Positions 40,322 to 62,123 of a DNA stretch of 64,000 bases are shown piece by piece; within the stretch, counting starts at the first letter, position 1; each line of letters begins with the position of its first letter. The translations under genes and the position numbers were made by a program. Source of the stretch: Zancudomyces culisetae HAW-14-8 (Eukaryota; Fungi; Kickxellomycota). The stretch covers positions 1,798,001-1,862,000 of the forward strand of contig JBNJNM010000006.1 of the NCBI GenBank assembly GCA_052426225.1, given 5' to 3'. The notes under the pieces are model-generated. The model did no database searches and was not told the DNA's origin. It was given only the letters and a program-made list of their open reading frames with translations.

Positions 40322-41074
40322 TTAGCTGGTGGATGCACTTTGTGTATCGGATGCGGTTGTCTTATCTCCAACGTTAACTTTGTTTACACTAATACTATTT
40401 ATTTCTAGCTTTTCAATAGAAACGTTTTTTAAATCTGTGTTTGATGTCTGAGAATCGCTTGTATTGATTTCGCTGGTATTTGGCTCACTGGTATTGATTC
40501 CGCTGGTATTTGGCTCACTGGTATTGGTTTCGCTGATATTGGTTCCGCTGGTATTGGTTCCATTGGGTTGACTGGGTATATCTGTAGGCGATACAGGTAT
40601 TACTACTATAGAAGTTACGGTTGTAGTTACTGATGTTGTTTGCAGACACGTTTCTGTAAATATTTCAGTCAATACCAAACTATTTGTTGATGACTCTACT
40701 AGAGAAATGGTATCAGTAAATGTTTTTGTAATTATTGTAGGCCCCGTACCACACCATATGTTTGTATACTGTCCGTATCCAGAACCGGTTGTATATTGAA
40801 GCTGTGGTGCCGTTGACTGTGAATTGTAGCTGCTAGATCCAGTTCCAACAACTTGCGTGTTGTATTGGGACTGTGATGGTACCGGCTCTTGTTGTGACAG
40901 TAATTGCGGACTGTAATCACTATTCCCCACATCACGGACGTTGTGCTTTTGTACCACCACCCCAAAATCATGTTCACCGCTAGCTCTACCCAAACTTTGT
41001 GTACCGAGTGCATAGCTGGCATACAGCAATACAGCCATAGTTACGTTTGTGACTGACTGTTTTAATACTGTCAT
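40322..41074 (-). CDS. Secreted Ser/Thr-rich protein (family member A), 250 aa
   Basis: ATG at 41074, signal-like MTVLKQSVTNVTMAVLLYASYALG, Thr-rich block, NTS repeats, C-terminal pentapeptide motif. Confidence 0.75.
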   Translation of the reverse strand: MTVLKQSVTNVTMAVLLYASYALGTQSLGRASGEHDFGVVVQKHNVRDVGNSDYSPQLLSQQEPVPSQSQYNTQVVGTGSSSYNSQSTAPQLQYTTGSGYGQYTNIWCGTGPTIITKTFTDTISLVESSTNSLVLTEIFTETCLQTTSVTTTVTSIVVIPVSPTDIPSQPNGTNTSGTNISETNTSEPNTSGINTSEPNTSEINTSDSQTSNTDLKNVSIEKLEINSISVNKVNVGDKTTASDTQSASTS

Positions 41075-41782
41075 TGTTGTTAAAATATATGGTAATGTCT
41101 CCACAATTTGCCTGTATGGGCCTTGCAAGTATGGGTATTAGCAAAACAAAAGTAAAATCAATTCCAATATATCTACACGCAAAGTAGAAAAGATAAGTTT
41201 GTATATGAAATCTAATAATTGGGATACTACAGTGGGTATTTAAATATATATTTATGGGTATAAAATACTTTGTGTTCAAAGTTTGGATTAGTTGTTTTTT
41301 GGTTGATGGCCATCGAGGTTGTATACACACTTTCTCGTGCGTTTGCTTTGATTTACCCACCATCTATTTGTATACACACATTAGCCTAAATAATAAATTG
41401 TTTTATTTTATTTTCAAAGTTGTCTTCAAGCGAGGCTGTAATGGCACAAGTACAAATTCACAAGTAGTACAAGAATACAAATATAAGAATAGTAGCACAA
41501 ACACAAACACAAACACAAACCCATAATTAGTACGCAAATGAATACAAGTGCGTGGGTAGTTCATAAGCACAAATACATAGATAATACACAAATTCGATTA
41601 AAAAAGACAGCGGATATTGATGATAATCAACAAGAGTGTATTGACCTGACGACCGAAAATACTCTTAAACGTATTTGTCGTTCCACACGGCTGGGAGGGG
41701 AGGGGGCGGGGAGAGGGCATGAGAATTGCGGTAACCAAAATGTAGTTGTGTGTGATCCGGAGTTTTGTTTCAATTTGTGGGA
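40870..41782. repeat. ~0.91 kb direct duplication, copy 1
   Basis: Near-identical to 54689-55600 (offset ~13.8 kb), with only a few substitutions and a 1-nt indel. Confidence 0.95.
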
Positions 41783-60335: not shown

Positions 60336-62123
60336 TTATCTGGTCGCTATTTTAGTAACATGTGGAATTGCTTGTGTTTCATCCTTGTCTGATACAGGAA
60401 GTGCTGTTACACTAGGAATCTTGGGTGTTTTTTCGTTTGTTTTTGAGGAAACTGAATCCAAGGATGCATTGTTTAAAGTAGTATCCACACTTGAATTTGC
60501 TATTTCAGTGACTAGCGGAATGGTATGAAAACTAGATTTTGTCAATGATTTAGATGACTCGGATGACTCGGATGACTTTGTACCAGCTTCCTTATTTACC
60601 TTAACGTCAGCTACACTATTTGGGGTTGCTGAATCTGTTTCTCCGTCAGTGCTGCTTGTATCATCAGTCTTGATAGTTTTAATATTAACCGTATTTAACC
60701 CAAGCTTATCGATGACAATACTGTCAATCTGTAATACTGATGGAGATGTACTCTCGGTCACAGTTGGTGCTGTCCCTGTGCCTGCATCTTCATTGCTCAC
60801 TCCAGTAGATGTATTTGAGCCTGTATTGGTATCCCCGTTGGTTATAGTGAAAAATGTTGTACTTGTAACAGTGACCACAGCTGTTTGAAGACTCGTATTA
60901 GTTATTGAAATAACTATGGTGCTTGCGTTGGTTGTTGTGTTGGTTATAGTTATCGTTGTAGTAGTGCTTGTGAGTATTATCTTGCCACTTGAAGTTTCAG
61001 TAGAACTGGGTGAAGGTACTTGGGTTTTGTCCTGACTATATACAGAGCTAGGTGTGCTATATGCAGGACTAGATGTGTCACAATCGGGTAAGCTTTCGCC
61101 GGTTCCAGGGTCAGTTCCTCCGCCGGTTCCAGGGTCAGTTCCTCCGCCAGTTCCGGGATCAGTTCCTCCGCCAGTTCCAGGATCAGTTCCTCCGCCAGTT
61201 CCGGGATCAGTTCCACCGCCAGTTCCGGGATCAGTTTCTCCGCCAGTTCCGGGATCAGTTTCTCCGCCAGTTCCGGGATCAGTTCCTCCGCCAGTTCCGG
61301 GATCAGTTCCTCCGCCAGTTCCGGGATCAGTTTCTCCGCCAGTTCCGGGATCAGTTTCTCCGCCAGTTCCGGGATCAGTTCCTCCGCCAGTTCCGGGATC
61401 AGTTCCTCCGCCAGTTCCGGGATCAGTTCCTCCGCCAGTTCCGGGATCAGTTTCTTCCTGTCTTTGCTTTCCTGCTCGTTTTACGTGCCATCTTCCCTTA
61501 GAAGTTTTTGCTTTTGTATCAGAAGATGATTTGCATATATTGTTGTCACAAAGTCTGCCCTGTAGTGTACATATACATACCGAACATCCATCATTTCTGT
61601 AAAAGCTACCACTTCCAAATGTATCAACGCACATAAGATGCCTTTCTACATTATTTTCGGTTAGGTGCACATTATCGAATCTAGACACTGTTTTCGAGTT
61701 GAAATCCCTGTGAGTAACATGATCCAACAGTTCATGAGCGTTACTAAAATCTTTGGTGCTACACTTAGGGCCGTTTAACGTGCAAATACAGCTTGAAGAA
61801 CCATCTTCTCCACTGAATACATCATAGTCATATTTGGCAACACAGCTGTTATATGCTTCCCACTTTTTTGCAATATCGTAGCTTAATAGAGAGTCTTCGT
61901 TGATGTCTGATGGGTTACACAGTCTATACCTATTACACAATATTCCTTCATCATCACAATGGCATACTGAGCACCCTCTGTCCAGGAAGAATAAATCTTC
62001 GCCGTAAATACTGGTACATTCGCCCAAAAGATTAGTGTTAGTGCTAAAACTAGATTTTGCAGATGCTGAATAGAGCATTGCAAGTACGTGGATATTTGCA
62101 GCTATTTTTCTTAACCCTCTCAT
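60336..62123 (-). CDS. Secreted protein with three pacifastin-like Cys domains and TDPGTGG repeats (family member D)
   Basis: Signal peptide, 3 Cys modules, KR site, 15 octapeptide repeats, Thr-rich block, pentapeptide motif, IPxVT x3. Confidence 0.85.
   Translation of the reverse strand: MRGLRKIAANIHVLAMLYSASAKSSFSTNTNLLGECTSIYGEDLFFLDRGCSVCHCDDEGILCNRYRLCNPSDINEDSLLSYDIAKKWEAYNSCVAKYDYDVFSGEDGSSSCICTLNGPKCSTKDFSNAHELLDHVTHRDFNSKTVSRFDNVHLTENNVERHLMCVDTFGSGSFYRNDGCSVCICTLQGRLCDNNICKSSSDTKAKTSKGRWHVKRAGKQRQEETDPGTGGGTDPGTGGGTDPGTGGGTDPGTGGETDPGTGGETDPGTGGGTDPGTGGGTDPGTGGETDPGTGGETDPGTGGGTDPGTGGGTDPGTGGGTDPGTGGGTDPGTGGGTDPGTGESLPDCDTSSPAYSTPSSVYSQDKTQVPSPSSTETSSGKIILTSTTTTITITNTTTNASTIVISITNTSLQTAVVTVTSTTFFTITNGDTNTGSNTSTGVSNEDAGTGTAPTVTESTSPSVLQIDSIVIDKLGLNTVNIKTIKTDDTSSTDGETDSATPNSVADVKVNKEAGTKSSESSESSKSLTKSSFHTIPLVTEIANSSVDTTLNNASLDSVSSKTNEKTPKIPSVTALPVSDKDETQAIPHVTKIATR
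61092..61451 (-). repeat. Coding 24-bp minisatellite x15 encoding TDPGTGG(G/E)
   Basis: Units such as CAGTTCCTCCGCCAGTTCCGGGAT read directly on the + strand. Confidence 0.95.

Follow-up and report, generated by a model that had tools for sequence, protein, structure and literature searches.

The window analysed here, a 64,000-nucleotide stretch of the published PacBio HiFi assembly of Zancudomyces culisetae HAW-14-8 (PMC12611240), contains four genes on the minus strand: gA (40322..41074, an ORF of 250 amino acids), gB (54251..54893 in the predicted two-exon form), gC (56986..58233, 415 amino acids) and gD (60336..62123, 595 amino acids). The starts of gA, gC and gD are those of the first-pass annotation, which had described the four genes as one family of secreted modular proteins and had suspected a Harpellales host. 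The suspicion was correct: Z. culisetae is a mosquito-gut fungus of this group, and near-identical proteins have been deposited from strain COL-18-3 (AX774_g1980 / OMH84491.1 for gD and AX774_g1982 / OMH84493.1 for gA). The cluster is interrupted by PIG-X, a WD40 gene and Cdc6/Cdc18, which lie between gB and gA.

The genome searched comprised 25 contigs with a total of 27.09 Mb; the longest contig measured 5.24 Mb. Contig C10 carries a second copy of the whole block with about 99% identity. Because the species is reported to be probably diploid (PMC5954228), this copy was read as the other haplotype, and three alleles (window, C10 haplotype and COL-18-3) were compared. All reading frames were intact in the three alleles, including the inferred second exon of gB. 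In the 2016 short-read assembly gD, gC and gA are directly adjacent. This arrangement was not accepted as a real deletion allele: the 13,959 bp that it lacks form a separate contig, both ends of which meet inside the 928-bp repeat described below, a pattern typical of short-read collapse, and the adjacency is therefore most likely artefactual. The nearest relatives of Z. culisetae are Capniomyces and Ejectosporus (PMC13373617). When synteny was anchored on Cdc6 in Smittium simulii, S. culicis and Furculomyces, the neighbourhood was found not to be kept.

gA, gC and gD are built alike, with a putative signal peptide, a block rich in Thr, a repeat spacer that varies from gene to gene, and a 24-residue motif with pentapeptide periodicity (all features given here are on the minus strand). 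In gA the signal peptide is followed by a Gln/Tyr/Gly spacer, the Thr block, a 15-bp repeat coding for N-T-S sequons (40454..40564) and the pentapeptide motif (40364..40435). gC lacks a Cys head; it has a KR at residue 38, a Tyr/Gly/Asn spacer, a TCT/QT threonine repeat array with periodic Cys (57526..57984, period approximately 102 bp), an acidic SD/SE run, the pentapeptide motif (57187..57258) and two (V/I)PxVTx(I/L) repeats (56995..57081), hereafter PxVT. The longest of these proteins, gD, consists of a signal peptide, a triple Cys head (residues 36-197, 61533..62018), a KR dibasic site directly after the head (residues 215-216, 61476..61481), a 24-bp coding VNTR (61095..61451) specifying 15 copies of TDPGTGG(G/E), a Thr-rich block (60828..60992), the pentapeptide motif (60660..60731) and three PxVT repeats (60348..60521). 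The elements that had been described for the middles of the proteins (NTS repeats, TCT repeats, TDPGTGG x15 and Cys modules) were confirmed.

The significance of the shared signatures was assessed with profiles and composition shuffles. An ungapped 24-residue profile of the pentapeptide motif made from two genes found the third at the expected place; in this leave-one-out test gA, gC and gD each gave 1/2000 whole-protein shuffles and 0-3/2000 tail shuffles, and none of 78 background ORFs reached the score, p values that are somewhat optimistic since the register was picked by eye. The period is strictly hydrophobic-x-hydrophobic-x-x, and no other part of the three otherwise diverged proteins is as well conserved. 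It is absent from gB (1406/2000 shuffles). The PxVT repeat was significant only in gC and gD (0.0003-0.002 copies expected per shuffle; 0-1/2000 in the cross-gene test). The gB candidate stayed below significance (77/2000, with 7 of the 78 background ORFs scoring equally high), and no PxVT repeat was found in gA. The earlier statement that every member carries one or both C-terminal motifs therefore stands for gA, gC and gD, whose motifs pass the shuffle controls, and falls for gB. The 55-residue Thr/QT blocks of gA and gD align almost without gaps (6/2000 shuffles) and are homologous, and gC has the TCT/QT array.

The four N-termini had been called related signal peptides. They have a basic n-region, a hydrophobic core and a small-residue c-region, with moderate hydropathy (1.35-1.49). 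Those of gC and gD are clearly related (score 64 versus 16.8 ± 3.7 for shuffled sequences, 0/2000), that of gA only weakly to either (score 30, 6-17/2000), and the likeness between gA and gB reflects a DNA repeat. Against gC and gD a gene on C13, unlinked to the others, reaches scores of 55-63, so signal peptides of this type also occur outside the cluster. The same C13 gene has a KR site and QT-containing Thr repeats, and its spacer resembles the Tyr/Gly/Asn spacer of gC (25/2000 shuffles). On account of this spacer and the KR at residue 38, gC may be read as a relative of gD and the C13 gene that has no head.

The coding regions of gA, gC and gD have no mutual DNA similarity detectable by blastn, and no similarity was found among their promoters. 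Nevertheless, their modules are colinear, and the analysis supports gA, gC and gD as real, diverged paralogues; the proposal of a four-gene family is upheld for these three and not for gB. Seed-limited profile searches of the genome with the C-terminal parts returned only this cluster and its C10 copy. The C-terminal motifs gave no match in Pfam, PDB, NCBIfam, PHROGs or the ESM Atlas (best match to PDB profiles, E=2.2). A metagenome scan was blank. Length-limited word searches were also blank, but one of them missed gD's own allele as well, so that these blanks mean little. As far as this weak testing goes, the motifs have no outside relatives.

gB is a 98-codon ORF if left unspliced. Removal of a putative 94-nt GT..AG intron (54664-54571) would join exon 1 (54893-54665) to a 105-codon frame (exon 2, 54570-54251) and yield a protein of 182 amino acids; the splice sites, like the second frame, are intact in all three alleles. 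The first 68 codons are common to gA. Exon 2 encodes an acidic, Ser/Thr/Asp-rich sequence with no significant family motif (the exons were taken separately for database searches and joined for translation and pairwise shuffles). The resemblance to gA is due to a cassette of promoter and first-exon sequence, 928 bp long and 98.5% identical, which extends from about 710 bp upstream through codon 68 (copy A, 40858..41785; copy B, 54677..55603). No further copy was found elsewhere in the genome; with only two copies per haplotype, a transposon was ruled out. At two substituted promoter sites the two copies agree within each haplotype, but the haplotypes do not agree with each other; a single coding variant is crossed between the loci, and at the borders the similarity tapers off. 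For these reasons gene conversion between older paralogues appears to fit better than a single recent duplication, on the evidence of few sites, for which a mix-up of the copies in assembly is also possible. Such conversion implies co-regulation of gA and gB.

The alleles differ in repeat number. The 8-residue repeat of gD has 15 units in the window and 21 in the other haplotype, and through its sequon repeat the gA protein measures 250, 230 and 245 residues in window, C10 and COL-18-3, repeat counts from the short reads of COL-18-3 being unreliable. Point changes are few and give no clear sign of purifying selection: between haplotypes gA has 0 synonymous and 4 nonsynonymous changes against 9 and 3 in Cdc6, small numbers in both cases. 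No allelic change falls inside the pentapeptide motifs. These data bear on the view that the genes are weakly constrained by-products, i.e. that the shared motifs are mere leftovers from tandem duplication of secreted, low-complexity proteins whose roles are redundant or minor, and that gB is a pseudogene or chimera. The lack of DNA similarity between coding regions, of outside homologues and of an excess of synonymous changes speaks for it, as do the missing motifs of gB and the dependence of this gene on a predicted intron. However, the motifs have stayed in register while the DNA diverged beyond detection, and every frame, gB exon 2 included, is intact in three alleles. We consider this explanation rather unlikely.

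The Cys modules of gD (62018-61917, 61844-61761 and 61631-61533) had been called pacifastin-like, and homology bears this out. A profile of gD-type triplets matched, with an hhalign probability of 97.6%, an array of the same genome that is itself positive for PF05375 (E=1e-13). gD did not reach the gathering score of PF05375 and had no match to this family in Pfam, where only sub-threshold VWC matches were obtained. Modules 1 and 3 have the six-Cys scaffold with pacifastin spacing; module 2, having lost both C2 and C6, is left with four Cys. The residue after C2 in modules 1 and 3 is Ser and not the invariant Asn. The reactive loop between C5 and C6 has five residues, among them an Arg, in module 1, and is not closed in module 2, which has no C6. 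Module 3 keeps the four-residue spacing but has Asn-Asn at P1-P1', which is no typical P1. The AlphaFold2 model of the head (pLDDT 64) has a helix, a hairpin and two strands per module, and fold searches with it returned only weak VWC/pacifastin rows (TM<=0.29, Z<=2.3). As judged by these features, the head is pacifastin-derived but falls outside the pacifastin inhibitors, because it lacks the Asn after C2 and, in modules 1 and 2, the four-residue loop, and because module 2 is without C2 and C6.

The head is not confined to gD. It was found on at least eight other Z. culisetae genes, of which one is interrupted by a stop codon, with 27-55% identity; weaker matches at C13 1.007 Mb and on C8 and C11 are left out of this count. 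They include copies on C6 (1.17/1.20 Mb), C13, C15 and C11, with proteins OMH85662, OMH85733, OMH85468 and OMH84742. All triple-head paralogues have Ser after C2 except one Thr-type variant, and KR follows the head in gD, C13, C15 and C11c. These genes share the three-module head with gD but end in long Thr arrays, in hydrophobic GPI-like tails or in no tail at all, and neither the pentapeptide nor the PxVT motif was found in any of them. Head and tail therefore shuffle independently. The head profile found 17 proteins among 1.84 billion representatives: Z. culisetae paralogues, pacifastin-domain proteins of Smittium simulii, and proteins from Coemansia, Claviceps and mollusc VWC/pacifastin arrays. 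No protein from outside Zancudomyces in this set had the full triplet at high score.

gD could accordingly be suspected to be a precursor of a protease inhibitor, tethered or released, that shields the thallus from host gut proteases, with gA and gC as head-less derivatives. The homology of the head to Pfam-positive arrays of the same genome and of S. simulii agrees with such a role, as does the Arg in module 1, and the dibasic site could release the head. By the criteria of PMC13388995, the Ser in place of Asn, the five-residue loop of module 1, the defective module 2 and the P1 of module 3 are against it; so is the score below the PF05375 threshold, and gA and gC are left unexplained. An inhibitor function is, in our judgement, very unlikely.

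All family members are acidic (pI 4.1-4.5), contain 28-38% Ser plus Thr and 2-10 sequons, and have little Tyr. Such an acidic, Tyr-poor composition is unlike that of cationic or DOPA-type glues. The maximum C-terminal hydropathy of the members is 0.43-0.63, versus 2.1-2.6 in two head paralogues with GPI-like ends, in agreement with the first-pass annotation, which had seen no hydrophobic GPI or TM tail in any of the four. A secreted, modular and unanchored protein family is supported for gA, gC and gD. One NCBI entry, OMH82423.1, is labelled 'putative GPI-anchored adhesin-like protein PGA18'; the label was rejected, as it sits on a truncated model and a GPI tail is missing from the complete gene.

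The first-pass annotation had further proposed that a common C-terminal module assembles the proteins and displays variable payloads. In this scheme the pentapeptide motif would be a cross-beta or beta-helical polymerisation module, by which gA, gC and gD would jointly build holdfast glue, spore appendages or wall fibres that display different payloads. The strict period and conservation of the motif, unchanged in three alleles of three diverged proteins, the lack of an anchor and the release of glue by Harpellales spores in the gut (PMC5954228) favour the scheme. Against it, AlphaFold2 predicted no fold for the motif, and the searches made turned up no homologue beyond the cluster. Nor is there any relation between the promoters of gA, gC and gD, and neither gB nor any of the other head paralogues carries the motif. 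The AlphaFold2 model, a single-sequence monomer of the last 174 residues of gD (pLDDT 43.7), had no secondary structure and is uninformative for a fold that depends on oligomerisation. A Kex2-type cut at KR would part the gD head from its tail, which argues against display of the head as payload unless both stay associated. No specific link of the cluster genes to holdfast or spore appendage was found in this analysis. Co-assembly is in our opinion improbable. A more elaborate version, in which the motif is an undescribed beta-stacking module, the Kex2-processed proteins co-polymerise without GPI anchor into holdfast glue or spore coat, and gA and gB are co-regulated through conversion of the promoter cassette, seems to us somewhat less probable again.

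The reading we prefer, with a probability of roughly 0.55, is that gA, gC and gD are non-GPI, adhesin- or mucin-like glycoproteins restricted to Z. culisetae, most plausibly parts of a surface or extracellular coat. The three genes would have arisen by local duplication followed by long divergence. Their products would enter the ER by the signal peptide, become heavily O- and N-glycosylated on their acidic, Ser/Thr-rich chains and probably be cut at KR by a Kex2-type protease; in gD this predicted cut would detach the pacifastin-like head, which is rich in disulfides, from the remaining Thr-rich body. At the wall surface or in an extracellular coat they may be retained non-covalently through beta-prone Thr/Val/Ile stretches, for which the pentapeptide motif and PxVT are the conserved candidates. 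Expansion and contraction of intragenic repeats, together with gain or loss of the head, would account for the different middles, and gB would be a divergent or chimeric neighbour that shares the promoter and N-terminus of gA through gene conversion. The family is thus best read as small, apparently lineage-restricted and shaped by the expansion of repeats, the shuffling of modules and gene conversion. Points counted for the coat were the shuffle-beating motifs, colinear modules, composition, the missing GPI tail, KR sites, the presence of the head on other tails, repeat differences between haplotypes, intact ORFs, the likeness to Flo11 and the paucity of Flo11/Als/Mad homologues in Harpellales; counted against it were the moderate N-terminal hydrophobicity and allelic changes without clear purifying selection.

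The nearest known counterparts are the yeast flocculins and adhesins (Flo1/Flo11, Candida Als), to which the cluster is likened for its putative signal peptide, an optional folded head, a possible Kex2 cut, tandem repeats within the gene that are rich in Ser/Thr and vary in number, stretches of beta-branched Thr/Val/Ile, and the clustering of paralogues that recombine (PMC8617999). Flo11 in particular combines a signal, Ser/Thr repeats, beta-aggregation cores and Kex2 shedding with surface retention in the absence of its C-terminus (PMC8617999). Unlike these proteins, the cluster has no GPI signal, a pacifastin-like head in gD and two C-terminal motifs that match nothing known; PA14, Flo11 and Als Ig-like head domains gave no Pfam match at E<=1. 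With the 'ancestral' pacifastin-like class (MEROPS I19, PF05375; PMC13388995) gD shares the six-Cys module, an N-terminal Gly/aromatic hairpin extension, the CxC core, Gly in the C4-C5 loop, tandem modules and a predicted extracellular location. It differs in having no Asn in C-N-x-C, no canonical four-residue loop in modules 1 and 2, one disulfide lost in module 2, and a triplet fused to a repeat tail with KR after the modules and not between them. By these comparisons the cluster belongs neither to the GPI adhesins nor to the canonical pacifastin inhibitors. Pacifastin-like domains in fungi, this species included, are already known: three other Z. culisetae proteins (OMH84610, OMH80850, OMH80302) are in the supplement of a 2026 paper (PMC13388995). 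In Harpellales, which attach to the insect gut, homologues of the usual adhesins (Flo11, Als, Mad) are few or absent (PMC5954228). The prior for this cluster being the glue is low. What it offers beside the known systems is a pacifastin-like head shuffled among different tails within one genome, and short, concrete candidates (a 24-residue motif, a 7-residue repeat and a KR site) for the surface retention of an unanchored glycoprotein.

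The 928-bp direct repeat of the gA/gB cassette, which involves two of the clustered minus-strand genes for predicted secreted proteins, is present in two copies (window 40858-41785 and 54677-55603) 13.8 kb apart, with Cdc6/Cdc18, a WD40 gene and PIG-X between them. Within a haplotype the copies carry shared substitutions, which suggests ongoing gene conversion between them. The repeat most likely also caused a mis-join in the 2016 short-read assembly of the second strain, COL-18-3.

A Gypsy element (window 33922-39571) lies upstream of a tRNA-Asn gene (window 33838-33913), and its presence is polymorphic among the alleles compared (window, C10 and COL-18-3; associated segments L034:8250-10000 and L055:12837-12921). 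The site is empty in COL-18-3. C10, the contig read as the other haplotype, carries there a different LTR-type element of about 5.4 kb, in opposite orientation and with only 23% gag identity to the Gypsy element, inserted within about a base in the same A-run. These are two independent insertions at one spot, and support the view that integration of the LTR elements would be targeted to the tRNA gene.

The family may extend beyond the gA/gC/gD cluster, because a 200-aa secreted protein (L035:5444-6043; C8, 1.36 Mb) with a dibasic site, a Tyr/Asn spacer and TVTN repeats has a spacer similar to those of gC and of the unlinked triple-head paralogue on C13 (5/2000 and 0/2000 shuffles, respectively). 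Other genes encode pacifastin-like modules. The 374-aa secreted product of L037:4122-5243 (C11, 3.091 Mb) contains five, two of them with a Leu-Met reactive loop, and matches Pfam Pacifastin_I (E=1e-13). Two near-identical genes with the triple head of three such modules (L024:3700-7050 and L025:2777-7849; C6, 1.17 and 1.20 Mb) are separated by 29 kb, and their Thr decapeptide arrays differ greatly in length (1117 versus 1691 aa). Another triple-head paralogue (L028:4022-4877; C11, 1.487 Mb) is interrupted by an in-frame TAA inside the head and is probably a pseudogene.

Two further proteins were noted. The secreted protein encoded at window 18739-19749 has a basic, His/Lys/Asn-rich middle, and by eye its C-terminal part looks like a CAP/SCP domain. 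A secreted-looking ORF (L013:1041-2327; C12, 1.10 Mb) contains a long (R-P-I-C/H) repeat with poly-Pro and poly-His stretches, a composition that appears cuticle- or glue-like.
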